A stretch of DNA of 64,000 nt, from positions 15,158,330-15,222,329 of the forward strand of contig OZ316898.1 of the NCBI GenBank assembly GCA_973895155.1, in the 5' to 3' direction. The stretch is from Marsupella aquatica (Eukaryota > Plantae > Marchantiophyta). Below the pieces are notes generated by a model. That model was not told where the DNA came from and searched no databases. It saw only the letters and a list, made by a program, of their open reading frames with translations. Of the stretch, positions 11,399 through 62,550 are shown in pieces. Both the position numbers and the translations under genes were made by a program. The stretch's first letter is position 1. Each line of letters starts with the position of its first letter.

Positions 11399-14300
11399 TA
11401 CCCGCTCACATATTCCAGCTGCGAGAGCATCTGTTCGCATCGAATTATCAAGTGAGCCAGCAAGTACATCCCAACCTCGTGCCAAACGAGGCAGACCTTT
11501 GGGATCAAAAGATAAACAACCGAGAAGGCGTGGTTCATCTACACCACCTTCATCTGATGTCGACCATACCGAATCTACATCCCATGAAGAGATCTCTATC
11601 CACTACGCACACACAGGTGCGATGTGGGATAGAAATACTACTTCTATAGATGATGCTTTTGCATTAATGGTGGCAACACATATCACTGACGATACACCAG
11701 AACCAATATCCATCTTAGAATGCCAAAACAGACCAGATTGGCCTGAATGGCAAAAAGCTATCAATGGAGAATTAGATTCCCTACTAAGCAGACACACTTT
11801 TGGCCCAGTCGAGCCAACATCGCAAGACGTACACCTCATTGGCTACAAGTGGACATTCGTCCGCAAAAGAAATGATAAAGGCCAAGTTGTACGTTACAAA
11901 GCACGTCTGGTAGGGAAAGGATTTACCCAACAACCGGGAATTCATTACGATGAAACTTACTCCGGTTATGGATAGCACAACATTCCGATACCTTATCGGA
12001 TTTGCCATTTTCCACCAACTACAGATGCGACAACTAGATGTTGCAACTGCATATTTATATGGTACTTTAGACACTTGTCTATACATGCGATCACCTCCTG
12101 AGTTGGAGCAATGACGCCGAGCTTTAGCTCAAGGCGCTAAATCGCATATCCCATATTTACATAAGATCATAACACAATTATCTCAAGTTACACCTCATGT
12201 GTCATCTACACATGTAACTCATAATAACGACACCGTTGTGTCAACCGTACGGAATACTCGTCGCGGACTAGCTATCCACGTGTTGAAGGCATTATATGGC
12301 CTGAAATAAAGTGGCAGAGTATGGTATCAAAGATTTACTGATAAAATGATTGCCATGGGTTTTTCCCATGATGCCATCACACCATGTTTATTTATTAAAC
12401 ATGTGGATGATGAATATGTCATCGTTTCTATTTATGTTGATGACTTAAATATATTTGGGACACCCCAACTTACAAAAGATACTATTACGAGTCTTAAATC
12501 CACATTTGAGATGAAAGACCTTGGACATACAAACTTTTGCTTAGGCTTACAACTAGAGATCCTACCCACTGGCATGATGCTCCATCAAACAACACAAACT
12601 GAAAAGATCCTAAAACAGTTCAATATGAACCTAGCACACCCATTGACGTCACCAATGGTAGTACGTTCATTAGAAAACAATACTGACGTTTTTCGTAGTG
12701 CTTACCAATATTAGGACCAGAAACTCCTTATCTTTCTGCGATAGGAGCATTAATGTACCTAGCAAATCAGACCAGACCAGACATTGCATTTGCAGTTAAC
12801 TTACTAGCCAGACATAGTGCAACTCCCACAGCCAGACACTGGAATAGAGTTAAGCACATATTTAGATATCTACGTGGAACCACCGTACCGATACCGGGTT
12901 ATTTTACCCATTCGGTGCAAACCACGAGCTCATAGGATACGCGGATGCCGGATATCTCTCCGACATTGATACCGCAAAATCCCAAACTGGATACGTTTTT
13001 ACCATAGGGGGTACCGCTTTTTCTTGGAAAAGCGTCAAACAGACCCTAACAGCAACCTCATCGAATCACTCAGAAATCTTAGCTCTACATGAGGCTAGTC
13101 GTGAAGCCGTTTGGTTACGATCCTTTATAAACCACATCAACACCAAATGCGGCCTACCACCACTAACAAAGCCTACTAACATTTTTGAGGATAACGCAAC
13201 ATGTATACAGCAGATCACAAAAGGATTCATCAAAGGCGATCGGGTGAAGCATATAGCTCCGAAGTTTTTCTACACCCACGAATTACATGGAAAAGAGATC
13301 AACATTTTACAGATTTCAAGTACAGACAACTGTGCGGATCTCTTCACCAAATCATTATCGCCATCAGTTCATCACCGACACTGTCAGGCGATTGGACTAC
13401 GGAGCGTGCGACGCATGATGACCGTGGAGGCTGCTGCTCCACATGATACTTGATGATACTGACGACATGATGCTGATGATATGCTGTTGACGATCCACTG
13501 ACGAGACAAATGTTAAAGCTAGATCTACTATAGTATCTAACTTTATTTTATATCGACATTTATTATGACGAGGACTATTAGGCTGCACTCTTTTTCCTTT
13601 AGCACTCATATTTTTCTCTGCTACATTGGTAGAGTTTTTACTAAGCTAGAGTTGATAAAGGTTTTTTAACGAGACAGTCTACCTCGCTTATACTTATATC
13701 ATGTATTTCCTATGAACATGATATAATAGGTATAGTCTATGTTGTCTATATAGTTATCACTATATATCCAAAGGGGAGTGTTAGACTCTACCTCTAGCCG
13801 GATGACCGGACCAGCCGATCACCAGACATGACTATGTACCACCACTCATGGCTATTCAGATATTCATTCTCATTCCATCATCACAATTATATAGTACATT
13901 TGATCTGATTACTTGGATCATAGTGTACCAAAAAATAGACAAAGTATTGTGGAAGCCTTTTTTTGAAATTTAGTCCACTTGAACCACTTGAACCCCACTG
14001 ATGGGGGAACGATCAGGCCAATGCAAGCGAAAAAGCACCCAGTCAGATGAGACATGCCAAAGCAGCCCAAATAGAAAACAAAAAAGGGAGGCCAGGGAAA
14101 CCCACACACACCGAGCCAGTAATCCAGTATGGTAGCCTTCGAAAAGAACTTATATATAGTGCATTTAACTAATTGGTTTGGAACTGCGTGTACGGAGAAC
14201 ATAAGCTAGTTTTTTGCGAGTCTACCCAAAAAGTAGGCAGTAATTGGTTTTGCAACATCGTGGAACGTCCGGCCGAATTGGTTGGAACGTCGTGGAACAT

Positions 14301-40473: not shown

Positions 40474-41260
40474 TACTTTTTTTGCAGCACTCTCAGGTTT
40501 TGTTATAGTTTAGTTTTGATTAGTTTTGATTAGTCAAGTTCAAGTGCCGAATGGTGTGTGCGTGCACCAACACTTTTTCGGCAATGCTCGTTCTTTGTGT
40601 ACCCGTTTGTTTACTGGATGTATAAATGCAACATTCGCCTATCAAACTTCATGAGATGTTTTTTGTATTCCATCGGTCTGAAATGTGATTTAATGTGCGT
40701 CAAATATGAATTTAATGTGCATCCATACAGATCAGTTTATCAAACTGACAACTGCGGGATAAGTTCTCCACGTCAAATGCCCATCATCTCTTAGTTTATG
40801 TTTGGAAGTACTGTAATAGAGTCGTCTGGTTGACAGGTTTCATTTCATTTCTAAGAAGACATTACTAAGTTTAATTGACACACTACAAACTACGGGCAAA
40901 ATGCAAACAACTGCACTCGACTACCGATTTAACTGGCACCTATGGGTAAGACGTAAAATACAGTTGACGACTTCACAAAAGGACCAAGGTTGGCCAACAG
41001 TGGCGGTCACTTCTCTAGACAACGGCATCGTGAACTGAGCCAGTTTGCTTCATTCATGTCATTCATCGAAAGGGCAAAACAAAATGTTCATCATCCGAAT
41101 AGGGCAAAACGCAAACATCTTTACAAAAAGGGCAAAATGCAAACTTCTTTACAAAAAGGGCAGGCATTATACTTAGTCAATGCAAGGACAGTAGTGACTT
41201 TACAAAGGAACTACCGAAACTACAACTACCAAAATTACGTGCTTAACTCCTGCACTCCCG

Positions 41261-41374
41261 AAAATCCCACGATTTCACTACCAAAAATCCCACAATTTCA
41301 CTACCAAAAATCCCACGATTTCACTACCGAAAATCCCACGATGTTACTACCGAAAATCCCATGATGTTACTACC
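41261..41374. repeat. 23-bp minisatellite, 5 copies
   Basis: aaaatcccacgatttcactacc(a/g) repeated. Confidence 0.9.
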
Positions 41375-41480
41375 ATCGGTCTATGGAGCTGTGGTTGCCC
41401 TCGGATGTTATTGAACAAAACCTCCAGAGCTCATCGGCCTACCATCATTTGCATGTAGGCGGCCTCCATAAATGGGACAA

Positions 41481-45584: not shown

Positions 45585-48500
45585 TGTTACAAACCATATA
45601 CTCCAACAATGTAATGAATCTTATTCATGTGTCCAATATATATACATGAGGTAGTTGAGTTAGATCTTGGTTAGATCTTAACTCGGGTTAAGATATCTAA
45701 TCCTAGTTAGGGTATAACACTCCCCCTTGGGTGTTATAGTTTTTGATGAAATTATAACGACCAATCTAAGTTGCTATCAGTTAGATATCTTCTACCTATG
45801 TTATATTGTGAGATGATGGAGGTGCAGTCTCATTAAAACCTTCCCTACTAACATCATGGAAGGAAAGAGTATTGCCACCTTCCATCTCTTTTGTATGATC
45901 TATTTTGAATGTATGTTAGGTCTAGAATACAATATTGGTTTTATTTGTGTTTTCTATGTTGTTAGGCTCCATGGAGGTTGTTGTCTCCATTGTACTGTAT
46001 TTGAGTTATTGGTGTTCTTGGGGATGTCTTGATCTCCTTTGTGGTAGTATTGATGGTTTGCTTCTTCATAGTAAGTAGTCATTCTTCTTCAATAGTGTTG
46101 TTGTAGAAAAATCCATTCTCCCCCTCAATGTTAGAATCCTGCATCAGTTTCTTAAGACTTCGCATCCCCAAGAGGTGAGTTAGTGTTCTATGAGTAGATG
46201 GGGGTAGAGATTTTGTTAGGATGTCGGCTAGGTTCTTGTCTCCTGAAATCCATTGTATGTCGATGTCTTTTCCTTGTTGTTCATGTGAGAAAAAGAACTT
46301 GGGTGCAATATGTTTTGTGCGTTCACCTTTTATAAATCCTGATTTGATTTGAGTGATGCATGACATATTGTCTTCAAATATAGTTGTAGGCATGGTTAAG
46401 TTTTGTTTACCTGTTTGAATAAGAATATGGTCTATTACTTGCCTTAGCCATAAACATTCTCTAGTAGCCTCATAAAGGGCAATAATTTCTGAATGGTTTG
46501 AAGAAGTGGTTGCAAGTGTTTGCTTAGTACTTCTCCAAGATATTGGTGTTGATCCCATTAAGAATATATATCCTGTTTGAGATCTACCGTCATGTGGATC
46601 AGAAAGGTATCCGGCGTCAACATATCCTTTCAACTTATGGTTATCCTCATTAGGAAAATATAGGCCGAGGTCGGATGTACCATTAAGGTATCTGAAAATC
46701 CGTTTTAGCCCGTTCCAATGTCTTATAGTGGGTTGAGAACTATGTCTCGCCAGTAGGTTGACAGAAAATGCTATGTCTGGTCTTGTTTGATTAGATAAAA
46801 ACATAAGAGCACCGATAGCCGAAAGGTATGGCATATCTGAACCTAATATAGGTTTGAATTCTTCTCTTTTTCTAAACATATCCTTATCCTTATCAAGGGT
46901 ACGGATGTCCATGGGGGATTTAACAGGCTTCAACATATTCATTCTGAATTGTTGTAATGTTTTCTTTGTGTAAGTAGTTTGGTGTAAAAGAATGCCTTTT
47001 TCCAAATGTTCAAATTGGAGTCCAATGCAATAAGAAGTTCTGCCCATGTCTCTCATTTCAAATACGCTTTTTAGTGTTTGCATTGACTCATTCATCATCT
47101 TTTTCGTACCAAGGAGGTTGAGGTCATCAACATATATAGCGATGATTATGAATTCAGGTCCTTCATGCTTTATAAATAAGCAAGGAGCTATTTCAGAATT
47201 CTTATATCCCATGGATATCATTTGATTTTTGAATCTCTGGTACCATGTACGTCCACTCTGTTTGAGTCCGTAAAGGGAACTAAGGACTTGAACTGCATAC
47301 CGGGTCTTTGCTCCGGTTGCCTTATGATCCTTTCTAGGTTCTTGTAATGCAATTGCTTTGGAAGCATTGTGGAGTACCAATTTGTTCATATAGTCAAATG
47401 ATTTTGCACTATTATCATTGTGCATATGTGGATTATGTTTTGAATTTGCATGGAAGTTTACTCTCTCAATGAGTTCAGGCGGGGCTTCCATATAAATCAC
47501 GTTGTCCAGTTTACCATAAAGGTAAGCGGTAACAACATCCATTTGTTGCATTAGCAGTTTGTTGTGTATAGCAAATGCTATCAAATAGCGGTATGTGGTG
47601 ACGTCCATGACAGGTGAGTATGTCAGGGCATAGTCAGTTCCATAAACTTGTGTGTAGCCTTTAGCAACCAGCCTAGCTTTATATCTTAGTATTTCTCCTT
47701 GTGAGTTTCGCTTTTTAACAAATGTCATCCTATATCCCGTGAGGTGTTGGTCTAGGGAAGCTACGGTTATAGGTCCAAAGACTTTTCTAGATATCAAGGA
47801 GTCTAATTCGGAGTTCATGGCCTCTTGCCATTTGCTCCAATCTATTTGTTTTTGTGCTTCGGTCACTGATTTGGGATCTGGTAGGTTGTTAATATCATTT
47901 GCTACATGAGAGGCAAATATGAGATCAGGGTTGATCATCATTCTATCTAGTATGTTACCAGTGGAGTTGTAGTTAATGGCTATCTCTGGTTGGGATGGTG
48001 GTCTCGTATGGTTGGTTGGTGTAGGAGGTCTACGCTTGTTTCTAGGTTGTTTGTCGACTGCTCCTAGTGGTCTCCCTCTTTTGAGTTGTGGGAGTGTGTC
48101 AGAGGATAGTCTCTGATCTTGTATGCGGGATGGTGTATTAGCCGCTGGTATATGGGATTTAGTTACATGTGTAGCATCAGCAAATGAGTCGGGTAAGGAC
48201 TCCATGATCTTGGTTAATTGAAGTATCCTATTGACTTCTAGTTCAGTTTGGTTAGTTCGAGGATCTGGGCAAAGTGCCGGGGAAGCTTGCCATGTGAGTG
48301 TTTTGGTGTATGACTTATGTTTTCCCTCTTGCGTGTTAATGGTTGGGAAAATGTTTTCATAGAAATGGCAATCGCTGAAACGGGCTTTGAATATGTCAGT
48401 GGTTGTAGGTTCCATGTATCGTATGATAGATGTTGAGTCAAATCCTACATAGATGCCTTTCCTCCGTTGTGGTCCCATTTTGGTTCTATGAGGACCTAGT

Positions 48501-51500
48501 ATGGGGATGAGGACTTGGCATCCAAATATTCTTAGGTGTGAGATATTTGGTGGTTGCCCGAAAGCTAGGTGATAAGGTGTGTTGCTGTTAAAGGCTGATG
48601 GTCTATAAAGGAGTAGGGTTGCAGCATGTAATACTGCATGGCCCCATGCTGATGTTGGGAGTGATGATTGCATTAATAGTGGTCTAGCAATCTGTTGTAT
48701 ACGTTTAATAAGTGACTCCGCTAGTCCATTCTGGAAGTGGACATGGGGTACATTATGTTGGGAGTCAATTCCATTTATTGTGCAGAAGTCATCAAAGGTT
48801 CTAGAAGTGAATTCACCAGCTCCATCAGTTCTAAGGGTTCTAATTGGATTTTCAGGGAATTGTGACCTTAGTCTTAAGATGTGTGTAAGGATTCTGGGGA
48901 AGACTAGGTTGCGGGTTGATAATAAGGATACTCTGGACCACTTAGAACTGGCGTCTATCACTACCAAGAAGTATCGAAATGGTCCACTTGGTGGGTCGAT
49001 TGGTCCACATACGTCCGCATGGAGTCTCTCAAAGGAATGCGGGGATATGGTTTTTGGTTTTTGGGATGGAGGGGGTGGTAATCATCTTGCCCTGGGAGCA
49101 GGCAATGCATGGTTTTTGGAATGACCTTGGGTGACAGGTCTTTGGTATTCCTGTTGAGTTGTTGACTATCCTATGGAACATGCTGGTTCCTGGGTGTCCC
49201 AATCTCATGTGCCATGTCTCGGTGATATCTTTGGATTCGACCCCTAGGTTATAACATTGGTTTTGGGTGATGTAGAACCCTGAAGGGTGGGTCGAGATGG
49301 TTTCTCTAATGATTATCCCTCCTGGTGAGTGTGATGTTATTTGCAGTACTTCTTGTAAGTTTTGGATGTTTGTTTGGATATGGTAGTTGTTGGCTCTAAT
49401 ATCTTGGAAACTCAGAAGGTTCCTTCTTGCTTTGGGGGCATATATGGCTGATGGGCATCTAATTATTGTGCCTCCAGGGAGAGTTAAGGTGGCTCTTCCG
49501 TGACCTTCTTCTATTTGGCTTTCTCCGGTTATAGTGATTATTTGTCTTTGGGAAGGGATAATTTCATGGAAATATTTTCTATTTCGGAGGATGGTGTGTG
49601 ATGTACCGCTGTCTATAATGCATACATCTATATCCTCTAGCTCAGGTGGGGGGTCTACCATATAAATTTCTGGTATAATCTCAGGTGATTCCAGGTAAAC
49701 TCCATGGGTTTCAAGTTTTGATCCATCTAAACTTTGTTTGTAGAGTTTCACAAGATGGGCTGGGGCATGGCATACCTTTTTGGTGTGACCTTTTGTACCG
49801 CACCTGAAGCATGTGATTGAGCTGTTTGAGTTGTTTCTTGGCTTCTCTTGGTAGTCGTTGCGGCCTCGTTTCCATGTGGTCCTTCCGGGGAAATTGTTTC
49901 TTCCACGGCCCCTTCCGCGGTTGCTGAATCCTCCTCTGGGTCCTCCTCTGTAGGAGTAGTTCGATCGTCCTCCCTTCATTCCTCTTCCCCTATATGAGCC
50001 TCTCCCCCTGAATTTACTTGTATTTCTATCATAAGGTGTGGTCAAGTTAGCTTCTCTCAGTTTCTCGTTTATAATTAAGTTCGTCTCAGTGGTGGCAGGT
50101 ATTGGGAGTGTACCCGGGGGTCTATCCTTTGCATTTGTCATGAGTAGGATTGAGTTTTGTTCTGCCAAGAGCATGTGTGCTATTAGTGCTGAGTATTTAG
50201 TGAATGCCATGTTTCTATACTGGTTTGAGATTACTAAGTTTGTAGGGTGAAATGTTGCTAGTGTCTTTTCGATTTGTTGTTTATCATTCACTGGTTCACC
50301 GCACATTTGGAGTTCGTTCGAGATGCGGAACATCTCGCTGTTGTATAAGTCTACCATTTTGAAATCTTGCACTCTTAAGGTTACCCATGCTTGTAGCGCA
50401 TTTGGTAAGTTTATAGTTGTTATGTGTTCAAATCTCTCTTTCAATGCATCCCATAGGAGCCTTGGGTTGTATATCGTCTTATATTGATGTTTTAATGGTT
50501 CTATTAAGTGGTGTCTTAGTAGGACTAATGCTTGGGCCTTCTGGTATTGGTCCACCCCAATGTCGGTATGTATTGTTTCTGGGATTCTTTTTGCGGTGAG
50601 GTTAACCTCCACGTCTATTGTCCAATCATTATAGTTCTTCCCGTCAATTCTTAGTGCTGGGAATAATAGTTTCTCCATTGCCATCTTGGGCTAATATGGG
50701 TTCACCTTGTAAATGTATGCAATTAAGGAGGGTTCAATGGAGTTTTGCACTTAGCTATTATTTTGTGGTGGATCAGCTTCGCTTGCTCCTTTCTTTTGGT
50801 ATTCACTATTCTTCAGGTTTGGTCCCGGTATGATTGGATTCTTCCTTCTTAGGTGGGTGGAAAGGAGAATTGGGGGTCGCTGCCCTTGCTTGTACGTTTT
50901 CGGTCTGGGGCTCGCGTTTGCTCTCTTCGCTATGGTGTGCTTGGTCTTTCTCTCTCAGTCCTGCGGTGCTCTATTGCTCAGGTCTTCTTTCGTTCTCTGT
51001 GGATGGTGCTGCTTTTTTTTTTCTTGAACCCAATTCCTTCGGCTCTCTTCAGTGTGTTAATTTGCCTGGGACTCTTCTATGTTCGCGTTTTATCTCTCAG
51101 AGTCTTCTCTGCAATTTTTGTGTATTTCTTTATTCTGCTCTTCTTGTGTGGGATCGATCCGCTTTGACTTCAGTCAGGGTCCCTATACGGGTGGTTTCAA
51201 TTCGGTGTGGGATGGTGTGCCGATGAAGTCCTTATCGATCTTCTGTTTCGTTTCGTCTTGTTTCAACGCTGCGCTGTCTCAAGTGTGGGTCCGAGAGTCA
51301 GTGGCTACAGGCGGCGAAGCGTCGAATTGTGAATTCAGTGGCTACATGCGGCGAGCGTCGAATTGTGTCTGAGTTGTGTCTGGATTGTGTGGTGCTATCT
51401 GCGGAACGGCGCCTCATGGCTTTGTCCGGGGCTTGGTCTTCGTGTTGAGTTGGCGCTATCGTTCCTTCAAGTGTGCTATGCGTCGTCTGCGGGATTTGTC

Positions 51501-51983
51501 TTGAGTTGCTGTGGGTTTCAAGAAGTTCTACTCTTCTGCCGATTTCCTTTCGTTTCAATTCCTTCGGATTAGACTGCGGCTGGCCCTTCGTGTTTCTGTT
51601 TTCGTTCTGTCTCTATGGTCCTACTGTTTGCCTATTGCTGGCTGGCTCACGAGATCTCTTGATGGTGGTCTATCGTTCTCAAGCCATAGACGAACAGTGG
51701 CCCATATCATTCCACTCAAGGTTTCTATCAAGAAATGGCCCTCAAATGTGGCCAAAAGTGCTCATCTTTTGGGAAAAACTCTTCGGATCTCCCCTTATGG
51801 TTTAGCACCTCTTCGTGGAGAAAAAAAATTGCATTCATGCTGATAACGTGTTACAAACCATATACTCCAACAATGTAATGAATCTTATTCATGTGTCCAA
51901 TATATATACATGAGGTAGTTGAGTTAGATCTTGGTTAGATCTTAACTCGGGTTAAGATATCTAATCCTAGTTAGGGTATAACA
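45585..51983 (-). mobile_element. Full-length young Ty1/Copia (Bianca-like) element
   Basis: Apparently identical 135-bp LTRs at 45585-45719 and 51849-51983; TSD ATCCA; PBS 51835-51848; PPT (AAGGGGGAG) 45720-45728. Confidence 0.97.
46079..50684 (-). CDS. Copia gag-pol (Gag-PR-IN-RT-RH) with a single +1 frameshift near 49031
   Basis: ORFs 49029-50684 and 46079-48967 join as ..IPAFL-ERLHADVCGP if one T is removed. Motifs DSGTSH, TDGAGEF, RTKMGPQRR, SHIPAAN, YVDDL, IFEDN and ADILTK. Confidence 0.93.
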
Positions 51984-52305
51984 ATCCAACATATTTTTGT
52001 TTGATTAAGAAACTCAGAAGTGAAAGGAAGCTTTCAACAGTAATTTTTGGCGAAAGCAAATCCAACTAAATTCTAGCGCCACATTCCTTCCATGAAAATG
52101 GCCTGAAATTTTAGCACCATAGTTAGTACAGTATAGTTTGGAAACTTTCAGGTCAACCTGTCTCAGGTTCGGAAAATTAATCCGTGGACCCCCATGTTAT
52201 TTTAGAGACAGTTATCTAGAAAGCCTAGATGGACCTCCAAATCTTAAGAAAAAAATTTCAAAAATGGACAAGTCAATGTTTGACACTTGAAACAATTGTT
52301 AAACT

Positions 52306-52664
52306 TGTCATGCCGAGGGACAATGCCTCTTATGCACATCGGCATGTCCCTCGCCTGCCCGCTAGGTATGTAGTTAGGGCTAGTGTACTACCTGAGTTAG
52401 CGACATGTTCTTGTAGCAAGTCTGGGCCGTTCTTGAAGCAAATGTGCTTGTTAGTGTGACGCCAGGACTTTGCTTGCTTAGGGCATGTCTTTCTTTGTGG
52501 GTTTTTCAGTTCTTCTTGAATCGCTGTTGACAGAGCTCAGATAGTGCTTGTCGGTTCCGTACACGGGATTCACACAGTGATTCGTTAGATGCTCCCGGCC
52601 GATCTTGGCATCCTGCCGATTTTCGATTCGATTTCAGTACAATTGTTTCTCTTACGCCTTTTAT
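52306..52664 (+). repeat. Repeat A1 (359 bp)
   Basis: Matches A2 (60045-60403) with 11 substitutions and no indels. Confidence 0.95.
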
Positions 52665-52676
52665 TCAAGAAGAACT
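52663..52676 (+). promoter_or_regulatory. Putative self-priming PBS
   Basis: ATTCAAGAAGAACT is the exact reverse complement of 52508-52521 (AGTTCTTCTTGAAT) inside A. No TGG-type tRNA PBS follows A1. Confidence 0.75.
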
Positions 52677-53142
52677 CTGTCGCCGGGTTAGCGGTGAAGG
52701 GAAGAAGATCGGAGACGCTGTGCTTCTCAATTACTCGAGACAGTTGACGCTTTTCCGCTGATGCCGGTGCAATTTCTATGGAAAAATGCTGAGCGATGGG
52801 GTGGAAGTTATGATTTTAAGTGTATACACTTAAGTATACACTTAAGTCAAACAAGCCCCCCTCCCTCGTTTTCCTTCACGTTTTTTTTGCCCAGGCTTTT
52901 CTTTTTCGGCCACAACCTGTTTCGCGACTTGCTGTTATCGATTGCCGCATCTACGCCGACTGCACAGGGCGCACCTGTGCTCGCGTTTTTAACAACTCCC
53001 TAGTACGACTGCCTCGGCCACCGCGCGCCCCTTTTCTTTCGCCCTTTTTCGCATTGCCAAACCTCAAAGTTCCTCCCTCCGTTTGTTTTCCTGCCTTTAT
53101 CTCGCAGGCTGTGCGTATAGGGCATTGTGTCTCCCACTGCCA

Positions 53143-53615
53143 GCATTTAATTAAGGAGAGGAGGGGGAGCAAGTACAAGCCGGGAGTCGAGAGGAGAAGG
53201 CACGGAGGCCTATGAAGCATTAAAGAGGAGGGAGGGGGGAGCCGAGTACCAGCCACGGAGGGGAGGGGGAAGCGCAAGGAGGGCACAAAGCCCTATGAGG
53301 AATTAAAAGAGGGGGAGAGAGGGAGTACATACGACTCCCTTCTCAGGAGTCCTACAGGGCACGAAGCCCACTTAGCAGCATTCAAGAGGAGAGGGGGAGT
53401 TGAAGCGAAAGCAGGGCACGAGGCCCTAGGCAGCTCTGAAGCATTTAAGAGGAGGGGGGGGCAGTACATTCGAACTCCCTCACACGGGAGTCTTTTGCCA
53501 GGGCACGAGGCCCAAATTGCATTGAAGGAGAGGAGGGGGGGAGTTCGTAGCCCCTTTTCGGGAGCACATAAGGTGGGGCACGAAGCCCTATGGAGGGCTC
53601 ATGCCATTAAGAGGG
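53143..53615 (+). repeat. Array of six structured units: GCATT.AAG-polypurine / variable spacer / GGGC-ACGA(A/G)-GCCC hairpin
   Basis: Hairpins at 53198, 53281, 53357, 53414, 53501 and 53576; purine tracts start near 53143, 53217, 53300, 53378, 53441 and 53519. Confidence 0.85.
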
Positions 53616-55550
53616 CCCGGTTTCTTTGCCCCCTCGCGACGTCTTTTCTCCTCTTTCCGGCCACCTACGAGCTTGCCTCGGCTATTTGCGGGCCACTTGG
53701 AGGTAGTTTGTTTTGCCAAATTCCCCGAGAGGAAGCAGCTACGACAGCAGGCCACTCATCCTACTCCTACTTCCACTCCCCCACCAGCTAGGAAGGCTCC
53801 TACTACATCAGTTGCTCCTCCTTCCAGTGGCAAAGCATCTAGTGCTAACAAATTGCCCAAGCAGCAACAGAAGCAACCAGCTCAGAAGGAGGCTCACAAC
53901 GCACAGGCAACTCAACTCCAGTCTCTGACTCATGAGGTTGAGTCCCTACGTGCCCAATTTGCCAACATCAAAGGCAAGTCCACTGCCTCTGCTGGTCCTT
54001 CTCAACCGGCTGGTCACGTGCAACCCATCCCTGGCCCAGGCACCACTGACAGTTTAGCACCTCTACCCTGCTCTTTCTATGGCTTGCCATTTGATGCTCA
54101 TATGGGTGAGTGTGTGCTGTCCTCTGCTACACAGCCTGGCCTTGCAGTAGAATTTTCAGATTCATTCTGCCCTTCCTATTTTGCTTACCAGCAGGCCAGT
54201 ACTGCCTCCCGTATTGCTTCCACACGCCGCATTGTACAGGCTGATGGTCTTGCTGCTAGTCCTATGACTAGAGCCAGGGGAGCTCGGGCTGTCATGCCCC
54301 AATCTTTTCAGCCACTCACACTTGCTGAAGAGTGCACCTTGTTGGCGAGGGGGGAGGGAGCTGCAGCTACATCCATTCCACCACTAGGTGTTGCTGACAT
54401 TTCACAGGGAGCTGTTTTTCTTGAGCTGCTTGAGCATTTCACCTCCGGTATGGCACAAAGGATTCTTACCACTCCACTTTTCAGTTGCCATGATTTACAG
54501 CTGGATGCTAGAGTTGTCATCAGAGCGCTCGAGGGTTCACTGCATTCTTCATCAGCCCCTGTGACACCGGTTTTGGAGGTCCAATCTCATGTACATACTG
54601 GACCTTCTTCTTCTCCATCACATGTTTCCACTGGTTTGGCTGCCCCAGTACCGATTGCTGCTGATTGTGTGACCAGAGCTACACTTGATTCTGGTCATGC
54701 TGCTCCATCTTTCCTGGCTATGCTGTTGAGTGGGAAGACCGTGGACACTAACTCCCTTCACAAGGTACCTCATCATTTGCCAAAAGTGGTGCCTAGTGAC
54801 AGGACTTTAGTTTCCACCACCATTGCCATTGTTGACAACAGGAATTCAGCAGTTAAGTTGGAGGGTCACACTCCTCAGGTGGTCATGCTAGACACAGGCG
54901 CTCAACCAGTGATCTTGGGCATTCAGTTTGCCAAGAAGATGGGACTGCTGACTGATCATTTACAGCAATCCAAGTGGCACATTCGGACTGCTAGTGGCAC
55001 TGTGGAGGATGTGCTGGGTGAGAGTTCTACTTTACTCACTCTCACTTTTAATGGAGGTACAGATCAGGAACTGCATTTCCCAGTCAGATGTTTGGTTACC
55101 AATGCCACTACGTATGATGTGCTCATTGGCCAGGAGGCTTTGTTCCCACCAGGTTTTACCATTGACAACTGGCATGAGCATGCATACTACAGAGTCGATT
55201 GGCATACGGATGGCTCACACTTGGGCTACATTCCACTTGATTTGCATGGTGCCCATACTCCTATGGCTCACCACTGTGTGTTGAAAGCAGTGCACACAGC
55301 TACCTATGTTAACCACCCATTGCAGGATTGGATTGAGGAGGATGATGATGAGGTGGCTACTGCACATGCTGCTGCACGTATAGCAGCACTTTCCAGCAAC
55401 GTGGATCATCAACCAGAGGTGGTACAACGGTTCCAAGCAGCCCATGGACCTTTGATGGCTGCATTGCACAAATTTGAGGACCTTGGGTAGCATAATGGAC
55501 AACCAATAGCCCCAATCTTGAGCGCACCAGTTACATGGACTCCTCCTTCA

Positions 55551-56500
55551 GATGGCCTTACATTGCTTGAGCTTTTTGGTGGCATTTCTACAGGCCTGGA
55601 AGCTCTCCTACAGTCTGGCATGGTGGTGAAGTAGTACATCTATGTGGATATTGATCCAGGTGCAAGGCAAGTGGCTGAATCCCGTCTGCTGGAATTTTCA
55701 GAGCGATTTCCTCAGCAATTTCCACACAGTGCATGGACGTCTGCATTTTCTTTCTTTCCTCCAGATATCCAGCTTGTCCAGCACCGGCACTTAACCCTTC
55801 TTGGCTCCCTTGATTTGATCATAGCTGGTTGGGAATGCCAAGGGTTTTCAGCTGCTGGTCACGGTGCTGGACTGCATGATTCTCGTTCTGGCCTTTTCAC
55901 AGCATTGGTTCAGATTCTCACCTGGGCTCAATCCCTTTATCCTGCTGTTGGTTATATCATTGAGAATACTCTATCTTAGTTTGACCAGCGTCCACAGGTC
56001 AAAGAGGATTTTAGTGTGGTCCAGCACTACTTGGGACCACCCCTTCTCATTGATGCAGTGCACTGTGATTCTTATGCACATCGTCTTCGTAACTTTTGGA
56101 CTAACCTTGCACCACCTTCCTTGCTGGAGATGGCTCTTCACCACACATCCAGGGACACTAACCTTACAGTGGACCAGATTTTGGATCCTGACAGTTCTTG
56201 CCAACCAGTTACACGGCAAGAGCCAGCACCTTGGTATCCAGCTAATACCATTGGACAACCCCGTGCTGCTTGGCCTACATTTGTGTCCTTTCCAGGTGCA
56301 CATGCTTTTCAGGGTGATGGTCCTGGGCTGGTTTATCGACATTCTACCGGTACATGGGATGAACCTAGTCCTGAGGAGAGAGAACGGGCTATGGGCTTCC
56401 AACCCGGTACTACAGGTCACACCAAAATCACCAGGCTGGCCAGGAATGCTTTACTTGGCCGGGTAATGGATCTCAATGCTCTCACTTGGCTTCTGGTCAC
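55551..56500 (+). CDS. DNMT3-like C5 cytosine DNA methyltransferase domain within pol (two in-frame stops)
   Basis: I LLELFGGISTG, II YIYVDID, IV DLIIAGWECQGFS, V DSRSGLF, VI YIIENT, VIII AHRLRNFWTNL, IX ERERAMGF, X RNALLGR. Confidence 0.88.
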
Positions 56501-59500
56501 TTGCATCCTTTTTCAGATGTACATTCCTCCAGCATTAGGAGCTCCAGCCTTACCACTCCACAGTGCTGCTGCATGGCATCCAGACCAGGTGCACTTACCT
56601 CTGTCCAACACTCACCACTTCAGTCCAAGTGTTGGGGGGGAGGAGGTCCCTTGTAATGTGGCTGACATTATTTCTGAGTTTCATGGTGTGGACCACTTCA
56701 GATCAGCAGGTACAACAGGCCTTGGAGAGGCCTCATTACCTTATCAGCAGCATGCTAGCAGCTTGGACAGTGGAGAGGCTGGCACTTCTGGCTCTTCAAG
56801 CACGAGTACATCAGGTCCTATTCCTAGTGTTGCCAACTACACATTTATCATGGGCAACCACCTGAGTAAAAGACAGAAGGACCAGCTGCTGAATTTGCTC
56901 CTCAAGCATGAGAATGTGTTTGCTTTCTCTATGAAGGACTTGGGTAAGTGCAAGACTATGCAGTTCTCCATTGAGTTGGCTGATGAAACACCTATCTTCA
57001 GGCGGAGACACCGTTTGAGTAAGCATGAGTGGCAGCTGGTGGATGAGAGGTGCCAAGAGCTCTATGAAGCTAGTCTTATTCAGCCATCTACATCAGATTT
57101 TGCAGCAGCTACAGTGATGCCAGCAAAGAAGGATTCCAGTGGATTGTGGACAGAGAAGTGCATGTGTGGGGACTACAGGCCATTGAACCTGGTCACACCC
57201 CAGGACAGGTACCCCATGCCACGGCCAGAGGAGCTATTTGACAGTATTGGAGACTCAAACATCTTCACTCTTGTGGATCTAAGGCAAGGCTTCAACCAGA
57301 TTTTGCTGCTTGCAAAGGATCGCAAGAAAACAGCTTTCCATGGTAGTAACCAACTATGGGAGTGGTTGGTGATGCCATTTGGCTTGAAGAATGCGCCCAT
57401 ATTCTTTCAAAGAGTCATGGACCAGGTTCTTCAAGGTGCTGAGTTTCTGAAATGCTACATTGATGATGTGTTGGTCCACAGCAAAGGATTTGACCAGCAT
57501 CTACTTGACCTTGAGGAGCTATTCATGAGGCTTAAGAAGGTGAACCTAAAGATACACCCCAAGAAGTGTGAATTTGCTGTCAGATCAGTAGTATACCTTG
57601 GGCATCGCATTCTTCCAAATGGAACCATGGCTCACTGGGCCAAGGTGGTATCCATCTTGGAAATGCCCACTCCTACCGATGTTCACACTTTGAGGAGCTT
57701 TATTGGGTTGTGCAATTACTACCGGATCTACATCAAAGATTTCAGTATCATTGCACACCCATTGTACTCTTTGTTGAAAAAGAATGTGCCTTGGACATGG
57801 AGTACAGATGCTGAGGCAGCATTTGCCACTTTGAAGGAGAAGCTCTCAGAATACCCAGTGCTAAGAAGACCTGATTTCAGCAAGGTCTTTGTGCTACACA
57901 CAGATTGGAGTGCCCTTGGGATTGGTGCCATTCTGGGCCAGCATGATGAGGAAGGTAAAGAGTACGTCATTGCCTATGCATCCAGGAGCAACAATCAGGC
58001 AGAGAGTCATTATTCTTCTTATGAGGGTGAATGCCTTGCTGTTGTGTGGGTTGTCATACATTACAGGCCCTACCTCTATGGGACCAGGTTTGTTCTCTAC
58101 ACCGACCACCAACCCTTGAAGTGGTTGATGACCAACGACAAGCTTACTGGCAAGCTTGCTCGTTGGGCACTCATACTCCAGGAGTATGATTTTGAGGTAA
58201 TTCATAGGCCTGGTGTGACACATCAAAATGCTGACACTATGTCCCGCAGCCCTTTGATTGCCTCTGATGATCCCTCAGATGCACGGCAGGATTTTGACCA
58301 GGTTTCCATCCTGCCTACATTTCATGCATCTACCTATCTTGCTTTGCTGCCATGCTACATTGTTGACCAACCTGTGGTGGACATATGGGAGGACAGCGAC
58401 ACTCTTAGATTTTTGCAGGATGGGGAGTACCCCACCCATGTTACTGCTGCCCAGAGAGACCGAATTCAGCAAAGGTCCAAGCGCTACTTGTGGAAGGGAG
58501 ATCATCTTGTGCGCTGCTTGCCAGACAGGGAAGTGGTGGTTCCACCCATTCATGAGAGGGTTGGCCTTATCCGTAAAGTACATTCTGAGCTTGGTCATTT
58601 TGGTGTTAAGAGGACTTATAGCCTCTTGGTCCCCCATTATCATTGGAGAGGCATGCATGGCCAGGTTCGAGATGTTATTTCCCGGTGTGAGCAGTGTGAT
58701 AGGGTAAGGACTTCTTTCACATCTCGGCAACCCACACTTCATCCACTCCCTATTCAGGGCATGTTTATCGCTGGTCATGTGATTTGGCTGGAGAATTACC
58801 CCTCACATCTCGGGGTAATCTCTACATCATGATCATGATAGAGCATTTCTCCAAGTGGATAGAACTTGTGGCATTGCTGGATAAGACCTCCCGTAGCACC
58901 AGCCAGGCATTCCTACAACAAGTTCTCAGCCGCTTTGGAGCTTGTGCAGAATGTCTCACTGACCAGGGATCAGAGTTCAGAGGAGAGTTCCAGGAGCTGC
59001 TTGATCAGGCCCTCATTGATCATCACCGGACATCATGAGATCACCCACAGGCAGATGGCTTGGCAGAGCGCATGGTTCAGACATGCAAGAAGGGTCTCCG
59101 GAAGATCTGCCTCACCAAAAACAAGGAGGATTGGGACCTGACCTTACCCTACATTGCCATGGGGTATATGATGTCCAGACATGCATCACTGTCTAACTTT
59201 TCTCCCTACTTCTTGTTGTTTGGTCGTCACCCAATTCCACCTTCTGCTATTGCTGCTCACATGCTTCAGGTGGTGGACTTGGATTCAGCTGTGACTTGGT
59301 CTGATGTGATCTCTGAGAGGGCTGCCCTATTCAGGAGGGTTATGCCCATGGCCTTGGAGAATTTGGCCATTGCATAGCACAGGGACACACTGCGTTATGC
59401 ACACACACGAGGGGGCACTTTTCAGCCCAAGGTCAGGAAGTTTGATGTGGGAGATTTTGTGTACTTGCAGCGGCAAGCTAACGACACCCTGGACACCTCT

Positions 59501-59673
59501 ACCAGTCGTACTATTCTTAGGGTTAAAGCTATTCGACCGTCTGGAGTGCTAGAGTTACAAGGGGCAGATGGGCGCACAATTGCTGACAATGCCAAGAACT
59601 GCGCCCCTTGTCATCTGCCTAACCTAGATCCCACCATTGTGACTTCTACTTGGATTCCACCTGTGGACTACCC

Positions 59674-59812
59674 TTGCAAGGTGTGTTTGCGAATTGATGA
59701 TGCTGACCAGATGCTGCTGTGTGACAATTGCAATGAAGGGTACCATCTTTTCTGCCTTCGGCCTGAACTTACCCAGGTGCCAGAAGGGTTATGGTTTTGC
59801 CCTTCTTGTGCT
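59674..59812 (+). CDS. PHD finger at the integrase C-terminus
   Basis: CKVC...MLLCDNC..GYHLFC..P.L..VPEG.WFCPSC (C4HC3). Confidence 0.95.
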
Positions 59813-59859
59813 CCACGTGCTACCTGAATTTTCTTCAGCCCTCCTTTTGGCTATGGTCT

Positions 59860-59866
59860 GGGGGGG
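59860..59866 (+). promoter_or_regulatory. Putative PPT (G7) directly before B1
   Basis: tct-GGGGGGG|ATACAGAGG, about 30 bp after the pol stop. Confidence 0.65.
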
Positions 59867-60579
59867 ATACAGAGGTTTACACTTCCACTACGTACATACC
59901 ACTTCATTTGCTTTTTCTTGACACTTGTGAATGTGATTGGACTTTTTCTATGCATGTTGGTTGCTAGCAGCTTGCACATATGCCTTGCCGGTGACTTGTA
60001 TGTTTTTGATACACTATGGCTACGATACTATATGCCACGACAACTGTCATGCCGAGGGACAGTGCCTCTTATGCACATCGGCATGTCCCTCGCCTGCCCG
60101 CTAGGTATGTAGTTAGGGCTAGTGTACTACCTGAGTTAGCGACATGTTCTTGTAGCAAGTCTGGGCCGTTCTTGAAGCAAATGTGCTTGTTAGTGTGACG
60201 CCAGGACTTTGCTTGCTTAGGGCATGTCTTTCTTTGTTTTCTTTTCAGTTCTTCTTGAATCGCTGTTGACAGAGCTCAAACAGTGCTCGTCAGTTCCGTA
60301 CACGGGATTCACACAGTGATTCGTTAGATGCTCCCGGCCGATCTTGGCATCCTGCCGGTTTTCGATTCGATTTCCGTACAATTGTTTCTCTTACGCCTTT
60401 TATATACAGAGGTTTACACCTCCACTACGTACATACCACTTCATTTGCTTTTTCTTGGCACTTGTGAATGTGATTGGACTTTTTCTATGCATGTTGGTTG
60501 CTAGCAGCTTGCACATATGCCTTGCCGGTGACTTGTATGTTTTTGATACACTATGGCTACGATACTATATGTCACGACA
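59867..60579 (+). repeat. B1 (59867-60042) - AC - A2 (60045-60403) - B2 (60404-60579)
   Basis: B1 and B2 are 176 bp with 3 substitutions. Junctions are CACGACA-AC-TGTCATG and TTTTAT|ATACAG. Confidence 0.95.
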
Positions 60580-62410
60580 AACTTACCAAGACAACCATAA
60601 TTAACATCAATCACAAAACAAGCTGCAATGTGAACTATTGTTTAATGTGTGGGCAGCTTAATTGCCCACTTCAGCAAAACGGTGATCGATTTCCTTCACA
60701 TTATCGAAGGGATACTGGATGCATTCATGTTGCATCGAAAATAATCACTTTTCAATTCCTACATGCAGATAGACAAAGAGAGAGAAGTCATCGGTGTCAT
60801 CAAATCACTAACCTTGCATAATTGTTTAAGACAAAATTTCATGGAAACAAATTTCCAATTGTGGAATTCAGAATGGATAGAAAGTTAGAAAATTTTAGAA
60901 ATTCATGACCAATTTAGTACTTATAAAATCTCCCAATGTCACACTCATTAGAAAGCTAGAGAACATTGGAAACTTATAATCTCCTCATAACTCAACTAAA
61001 TCTATCAATGTTAAGTTCATTAAACAACTAAAGAAATTCTAAAATTCATAATCTCCTTAGTACTCGATAAAATCTATCAATTTTAGGTTTATTCTCATGG
61101 AAGGGGTCAACATTTCAGGGGTTGTACAACAAAATTTCTATTCACATTAGAGATTACAAAATCTCAGGTAAAATCTATTTTTCAAATTGTTTACTCAATT
61201 CTTATCGAATGGTGACAATTCTGAGCTCATCACGACCGTCTCTTCAAGATCTTTCCAACGCCATATTATACGTGAGTTTTCATTATGATTTGACTCAACA
61301 ATGTCAAATCAAAAATTATTGTCAGGAAAATTTTATGTTTCATTCTTTTTATCTTTTTATCTTTTGATTTGCATGTCAATTTTTTACATTCCTTTTTATG
61401 GTATGACGTCCTAGTTTTTACAGCAAAGTTGCCACAAACACGAATGTAGAAGTTAATTTTATCCAAAAACAAGTCCCTTCCTGTTTGTGACATGTCATGA
61501 TGATGTGGCACACTATGGAACCAGGAATTTTGGAAAGGACCTCTAATGGGGGTCCGTAATGAAAAATCTGCACATCCCGGGGAAGAGAGTCTTTTGAAAA
61601 AGCAATAATTAAACGGAATACATTATTGACAGGACATGCTGTTGTGATATCCGATCTGAATGGTACATACCGGTTTTTAAATGCATAGTCTTTAGACTGA
61701 TAAAACAATATACCTTTTATTTTGACAAAATGTGACAATATGGTTTGGGCCAGTTTTCAGCTCCCATTTCAAGCTGAACTTTACTTTAGCGAAAAAGAGC
61801 TACGCTACCTCCATGAGCCTCCCAGTCCCTGTACATTTTGGTCAATCCTTCCCTAAATTGTACATTCCTGCCCAAAAGGAAATCCCATACTCTACTAGTG
61901 CAATTTTTGCTCCATGGAAGAATGATAAAATGCCATGCATTAGAAAATTTAAACCAATGGAATTAGGAGCTTACTGGTAAGTGTTCATGTACACTTATCA
62001 AGATTATGCACTTATATAGTTGTGAGTTATCCAAAAAGTGCAAACTCATGGAGGAAACGTGAAGACGCAACGCCATGCAGTTAGCTAGAATTTGCACTTA
62101 AGTAATGTGCAATTATAGAGGGATGATCGTATTCCAATAAACGACAGCAAGATCCGCTAACCTTCTTGGCAAACAGAGTTTATGTTGTACAGAGCGGTAA
62201 CTTTCTGCCCGTGAATTTACCGAACTACACTATCACGTATCAAACAACCAGAGGGCTTTAATCATCGGCGTAAATCCTGTCAGGATAAGAGGTTACCGGT
62301 GTGTAACCATTTCTACAGGGGCTTGTTATAGTCATAATCTGGTGTCCTAAAACTTTGAGTAGATAACCTCTTTCCGGGCAGGAGTTACGTAAGCTAATGC
62401 AGGGCAGGGT

Positions 62411-62550
62411 TGGGGTTATAGACTGTAACTTGTTCCCAGAATATTCAAAGAAGCTTCCCGACTGCCGCAGGTCAGTTTGGGCTGGGGTTATAGACTGTAA
62501 CTTGTTCCCAGAATATTCAAAGAAGCTTCCCGACTGCCGCAAGTCAGTTT
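62411..62550. repeat. 72-bp tandem duplication
   Basis: tggggttatagactgtaacttgttcccagaatattcaaagaagcttcccgactgccgca at 62411 and 62483. Confidence 0.9.

Follow-up and report, generated by a model that had tools for sequence, protein, structure and literature searches.

A Ty3/gypsy retrotransposon with A and B repeats

The window, by which we mean the whole stretch of 64,000 nt that was analysed, contains a Ty3/gypsy retrotransposon that spans positions 52306 to 60579 and carries a DNA methyltransferase (DNMT) and a PHD finger. It runs from an opening TG to a closing CA between two copies of AACT, a 4-bp target-site duplication whose left copy (52302-52305) lies directly 5′ of the TG and whose right copy (60580-60583) lies directly 3′ of the CA. 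Its repeats are found in the order A1 ... B1-A2-B2, all of them on the forward strand. The first, A1 (52306-52664, 359 nt), begins with TGTCATG, is about 97% identical to A2 at 60045-60403, and comprises the promoter region, the predicted transcription start site (TSS) and R-U5.

On the same strand, the coding region consists of a gag-protease ORF (53601-55490; PF13975, E 3.6e-7, and PF13650), part of a C-5 cytosine DNA methyltransferase domain whose frame is broken (55644-55979; PF00145, E 3.2e-7), a pol ORF for reverse transcriptase (RT), RNase H and the integrase zinc-binding domain (56016-58832; PF00078, PF17917, PF17919 and PF17921), the integrase catalytic core (rve) in a shifted frame (58784-59038; PF00665, E 3.1e-11), and a C-terminal ORF with a PHD finger (59447-59827; PF00628, E 3.3e-13). 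Because this coding region is broken, we regard the window copy as a fossil. The Pfam matches follow the domain order PR-DNMT-RT-RH-IN, with the DNMT reduced to a fragment in the window and intact in the relatives P0001, P0011 and P0013. The PHD finger sits at the C-terminus of the integrase, both in the window and in the relatives, at the place that the chromodomain takes in chromoviruses; no chromodomain was found at that position.

The 3′ part of the element, again on the forward strand, begins with a run of 7 G (59860-59866), the predicted polypurine tract from which the plus strand would be primed. It directly precedes B1 (59867-60042), which starts with ATACAG, ends with CACGACA and is 98% identical to B2. 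A 2-nt spacer, AC (60043-60044), separates the CA end of B1 from the TG start of A2 and completes an internal palindromic, att-like joint, and A2 (60045-60403, delimited by the A1/A2 alignment) is joined directly to B2 (60404-60579), which ends in CA.

Directly upstream of the element lies a Ty1/copia element on the minus strand (45585-51987), with gag, GAG-pre-integrase, rve, SH3-like and RVT_2 domains and with terminal repeats of at least 139 nt at 99% identity. Tandem repeats unrelated to the Ty3/gypsy element are found at 1-660, 899-1177, 41230-41375 and 62407-62550, with periods of about 196, 57, 23 and 72 nt.

The repeat layout is shared by relatives

Relatives were sampled as the DNA around 12 related proteins together with 80 metagenome loci. 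The best protein matches to the window pol come from Calypogeia fissa (81%) and from moss- or liverwort-associated metagenomes (up to 77%), and further matches come from Closterium (39-47%) and from K. nitens (P0013, 38% identity over 98% of the length). Outside the family, the closest pol matches, at 30-39% identity, are Gypsy elements from both animals and algae.

We found the A-coding-B-A-B layout of the window in L002, in L004 (C. fissa), in L012 (Closterium) and in more than ten metagenome copies on contigs that are long enough. In the relatives with this layout, A begins with TGTCA, B ends with ACA and a G-run stands before B1; a G-run of 7-9 G precedes B in L001, L002, L004, L005, L009 and L014 as it does in the window. 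Furthermore, the B1|A2 spacer is 2 nt long in every relative examined, and the relatives have 4-bp target duplications of their own (GGTC, AGTG, TTTA, TGAC and ATGT).

A 14-nt duplex connects the interior of A1 with its 3′ end

Within A1, the 14 nt at 52508-52521 (AGTTCTTCTTGAAT), which follow TC in the initiator-like context TC|AGTT, are the exact reverse complement of 52663-52676 (ATTCAAGAAGAACT) on the same forward strand. This complementarity had been pointed out in an earlier reading of the window from its letters only (hereafter the sequence-only reading), and direct inspection confirms it at every position. The bases that flank the arms, C/C and C/T, are unpaired, which sets the length of the duplex at 14 bp. 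We refer to the left arm as the predicted first 14 nt of the transcript, that is, the self-primer, and to the right arm as the predicted primer-binding site (PBS).

The same reading had placed the right arm precisely where the homology of A1 ends. In the A1/A2 alignment A1 ends at 52664, so that the right arm shares the last 2 nt of A1 and then runs into unique sequence; the placement is thus correct to within 2 nt. A second copy of the left arm is found in A2 (60247-60260), where it has no downstream partner.

The high AT content of the arms and the T-runs of the region could favour an inverted repeat arising as a chance match. However, none of 300 dinucleotide shuffles of the 469-nt window region reached 14 nt, the longest inverted repeat among them being 12 nt. 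The same test on seven relatives gave 0/300 in each, so that every duplex is longer than those in all shuffles of its own region. Together with a position that is conserved while the sequence differs, these results leave a chance match with a negligible probability, and a chance origin was rejected both by the shuffles and by the TATA-anchored comparison of 5′ and 3′ copies described below.

The position of the duplex is conserved and its sequence is not

A perfect duplex of 14-15 nt is found at the equivalent position in eight lineages, which comprise the window, two Calypogeia-type families, Closterium and metagenome contigs. It is 14 nt long in the window, L009, L012 (Closterium) and L013, and 15 nt long in L002, L003, L004 (Calypogeia fissa) and L005. 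Seven different arm sequences occur among the eight lineages, all of the pairs are Watson-Crick, and outside the group formed by L002, L003 and the window the arms agree pairwise at 2-9 of their 14-15 positions. In all four lineages for which the comparison of A1 with A2 sets the 3′ boundary of A, the first base of the PBS lies 1-2 nt before this boundary, so that PBS and A share 2-3 nt.

Two of the sampled loci were left out of this comparison, namely L001, an element without a direct 5′ copy of A, and L006 (K. nitens), whose contig stops short of the 5′ region. In L010 we found no duplex even when wobble pairs were allowed, and L007 and L008, in which the end of A lies outside the sequence covered, have no inverted repeat of 10 nt or more. 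L014 offers an 11-nt candidate only, which is not significant alone, as we estimate that about 0.3 such chance matches are expected in 1.6 kb.

Because the arms were found by a search for complementarity, the perfect pairing is itself partly the result of the construction, and we accordingly place the weight on the length of the arms, on their placement and on a control that sets A1 against A2. When the leaders of the 80 metagenome loci were searched without bias for their longest inverted repeat, palindromic arrays and decayed copies swamped the result. This search was for this reason replaced by a TATA-anchored test, in which the arm was anchored on the TATAAAAG box and the best 15-nt partner was sought 80-220 nt downstream. 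We found that 20 unique 5′ copies, in which unique sequence follows A, pair at 12-15 of the 15 positions, whereas 3′ copies, in which B follows A, and unrelated TATA sites reach a best partner of only 8-11 of 15. Old metagenome copies, with 84-91% identity between A1 and A2, show one-sided mismatches or G-T pairs, as is expected from decay after insertion.

Compensatory changes in related families had been suggested by the sequence-only reading as a way to check its proposal, and such changes are present at arm positions 5, 8, 10 and 11, with complementarity kept in all eight lineages. At position 8, a change from C to T is matched by G to A in the partner (L078/L079); at position 11, G to A is matched by C to T (L058); and positions 5 and 10 show compensated changes between the window and L002/L003.

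The duplex as a probable self-priming signal

The sequence-only reading had also placed the start of transcription near 52508, a claim that stands in part. The first base of the left arm is an A after a pyrimidine in all eight lineages (mostly TC|A), and a TATA box precedes the arm by 30-34 nt in L002, L003, L004 and L005, with weaker ATAAG motifs at about -30 in L012 and L014. The window copy, however, has no TATA box upstream of its arm, and there the initiator-like context is what speaks for the proposed start. Taking the YA context together with the TATA boxes of the relatives, we predict that the RNA has the arm at its 5′ end and that transcription starts at about 52508.

TGG, the complement of the CCA end of a tRNA, is absent within 25 nt of the start of the PBS in all eight lineages, and ARAGORN predicted no tRNA gene in the 64,000-nt window. 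Priming by a tRNA was rejected, as no TGG-type site follows A in any lineage.

When the RNA between the predicted start and the tenth nt beyond the PBS is folded, the full duplex is part of the minimum-energy structure in seven of the eight lineages, and in the eighth the fold constrained to contain the duplex lies within 3 kcal/mol of the minimum. When 14 more nt of 3′ context are included for the window copy, a local hairpin replaces the duplex in the minimum-energy structure, and the whole-region fold energy of this copy is not significantly low (z-score -1.35). The predicted folds, in which the duplex closes the whole R-U5 region as in the leaders of other retroelements, would also suit a conserved long-range stem of the leader RNA with a role in packaging, dimerisation or translational control, priming being left to a tRNA fragment or another RNA. 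We consider such a stem improbable. The lineages offer no alternative primer site in place of the missing TGG-type PBS, and the arms have a geometry that is specific to Tf1-type priming and not to a generic stem, with one at an initiator-like YA 30-34 nt past a TATA box and the other at the U5 boundary.

We favour instead the reading of the 14-nt duplex as the self-priming signal of a Ty3/gypsy retrotransposon of the Tf1 type, to which we give a probability of roughly 0.8. In the proposed mechanism, transcription would start at the A of TC|AGTT (52508) inside A1, and the first 14 nt of the RNA would fold back and pair with 52663-52676, where A1 ends. The RNase H of the element would then cut the RNA past the paired stretch, and the freed 3′ end would prime minus-strand DNA synthesis through U5-R. 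Removal of the primer would leave 1-3 primer nucleotides behind, and the right end of the cDNA would thereby be set at the 3′ terminus of A.

Self-priming had been deduced by the sequence-only reading from the window alone, and the wider comparison lends it support: the complementarity and its placement at the end of A are observed directly, as are the conservation across eight lineages of the position and not of the sequence, the compensated changes and the lack of a tRNA-type site. On this reading the RNase H cut would take place as outlined, and the primer may act in cis.

A proposed permuted integrated form of the cDNA

That the 3′ end of A is the true end of the cDNA, as had likewise been proposed, is made more probable by the overlap of the PBS with A in four lineages, by the G-run before B and by an A2|B2 joint that varies by 1-3 nt. 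An overlap of 2-3 nt between PBS and A is what incomplete removal of the primer would leave, and it resembles the U5 end of retroviruses, which keeps a single primer-derived base. B in turn starts right after the G-run, where a polypurine primer would set the start of U3.

Taken together, a self-primer site at the end of A and a G-run before B imply a cDNA repeat of the form B-nn-A. Standard reverse transcription would yield B-nn-A LTRs, and the termini of the cDNA would be the 3′ end of A and the 5′ end of B. The inserted form, A-PBS-genes-Gn-B-nn-A|B, would then be a circular permutation of this B-nn-A cDNA, in which the A2|B2 joint would represent the U5 end joined to the start of U3, and the ends of the insertion would come from the internal CA-nn-TG palindrome.

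Between related copies among the metagenome loci L033-L092, the A2|B2 joint differs by 1-3 nt. Its usual form is CAAT|ATACATG; L043 and L092 are without the AT, L054 has an extra G and is without one T, and L078/79 are different again. The spacer in B1-nn-A2, in contrast, is always 2 nt in these loci, as AC, GC, GT, AT or AA. A variable joint beside a constant spacer fits an imprecise joining of ends.

In retroviruses, the plus strand copies the end of the tRNA primer. A plus strand that copied the self-primer would re-derive the PBS of the progeny from the arm and regenerate perfect pairing. If this holds, the PBS would be re-copied from the primer in each cycle, and therefore the covariation between arm and PBS would come from the mechanism itself and not only from selection.

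Our joint reading of these features, which we put forward tentatively and at slightly less than even odds, is that the cDNA repeat is B-nn-A, that the cDNA ends are joined and re-opened by the DDE integrase at the PBS-adjacent CA-nn-TG, and that the covariation is made by the mechanism. If this reading is correct, the family would represent a natural lineage of retrotransposons that use a substrate of the circle-junction type for integration. Under the permutation model, linear cDNA should begin with B and finish with A, an intermediate in which A is joined to B should occur, and the integrase should cut at the internal palindrome. As a model, it leaves unexplained why the PBS-adjacent site would be chosen for opening in all full copies examined.

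The A...B-A-B order is also the layout described for DIRS-type elements (PMC5890265), and replication by a tyrosine recombinase in the manner of DIRS, PAT or Ngaro, with the inverted repeat serving at the DNA level in end alignment or recombination, would account for it. Against this, the integrase of the element is a DDE enzyme of the rve type, and the scan of its ORFs gave no match to a tyrosine recombinase. Furthermore, TG...CA ends with 4-bp duplications are found in at least seven copies, and the arms lie within the R-U5/PBS geometry of one strand, away from the ends of the element. We consider replication by a tyrosine recombinase very improbable.

Relation to known systems

To our knowledge, Tf1 is the only element in which self-priming has been demonstrated; for its relatives and a few plant clades it is a prediction. 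The Tf1 duplex of Lin and Levin is reportedly 11 nt long, unlike the 14-15 nt found in the window family. In Tf1, for which self-priming is established, and in Tj1, for which it has been proposed, a 5′ stretch of the element's own mRNA is complementary to a PBS that adjoins the 5′ LTR (PMC4600332). The window family resembles the Tf1/sushi group, Tj1 included, in that it has no tRNA primer site and that the predicted 5′ stretch of its own RNA is complementary to the PBS. It differs from this group by a PHD finger in place of the chromodomain, by a DNA methyltransferase between protease and RT, and by permuted integrated repeats; the likeness rests on the priming mechanism and not on the phylogenetic clade.

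Among plant LTR elements, self-priming has been predicted for 12%, including the Tcn1 clade of mosses and club-mosses and TAR copia elements (Neumann et al. 2019, PMC6317226). The window family shares with these Tcn1/TAR elements a range of non-seed-plant hosts and the same kind of in-silico signal, whereas Tcn1 elements, unlike the window family, are chromoviruses with ordinary LTRs. The survey makes no mention of liverworts, of Klebsormidium or of the DNMT/PHD family.

The closest description of the layout is that of KnitGypsy-Dnmt3 from Klebsormidium nitens, which was reported to combine Gypsy domains with ‘the structure of repeats of a DIRS retrotransposon’ (de Mendoza et al. 2018, PMC5890265). 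As described there, KnitGypsy-Dnmt3 has in common with the window element the Gypsy domain order, a Dnmt3-type domain in Pol and A-coding-B-A-B repeats; the passages on this element give neither a primer site nor a mechanism for the layout. The window element differs in its bryophyte-type host genome and in having its closest named relatives in Calypogeia fissa (81%). Our literature search for priming in the window family returned only this 2018 description of the layout; self-priming is a known mechanism that was not previously reported for the family in the literature searched.

In the circle junctions of IS3/IS30-type insertion sequences, abutted ends with a spacer of a few bp are cut to ends that are competent for integration. 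Cleavage by integrase of palindromic LTR-LTR junctions, as in 2-LTR circles, has been reported in other systems, where, in the accounts given, ends of a DDE enzyme abut with a few bp between them and are cut likewise (PMC1180852, PMC1905944). The window family would resemble these junctions in its abutted ends, and it differs from 2-LTR circles in that the CA-nn-TG ends lie inside the cDNA repeat and not at the joint of the cDNA ends, and in being known from sequence alone.

Conservation of self-priming between Closterium and liverworts, among elements that carry a methyltransferase and an integrase with a PHD finger, would widen the known range of this mechanism. Furthermore, it helps to explain the rearranged terminal repeats of the family, as the PBS would fix the U5 end of the cDNA and, together with the G-run before B, turns the puzzle of the split repeats into one that can be tested.

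Additional observations on repeats and leaders

A few relatives show other arrangements of the repeats. In the Calypogeia fissa element L001 (L001:3805-4381 and 13187-13942), B1-A2-B2 is found without a direct A1, and 9 kb upstream there is a solo A|B unit in inverted orientation, with 99% identity and with 4-bp flanks that do not match; this suggests an inversion or a recombination between copies.

In L010 (14786-15506), A2 and B2 are separated by a 322-nt copy, 99.4% identical, of the element's own pol region (L010:10977-11298). There is microhomology of 3-5 nt at both joints of this insert, and A2 stops about 10 nt past the TATA box. The insert has the appearance of an aberrant cDNA end trapped at the A|B joint, in a copy without the self-primer duplex.

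Three further contigs (L005:1-15825, L013:1-10898 and L014:1-11688) run continuously through pol, G-run, B-nn-A, PBS and gag, with a single B-nn-A in each unit and an order that is tandem or circular. This order could reflect a collapse of repeats in the assembly, tandem arrays in the genome, or circles.

Finally, the leader between PBS and gag contains arrays of short palindromic units, both in the window (53143-53615) and in L033, L042, L056 and L073, with units of the GCAACG type in the relatives.
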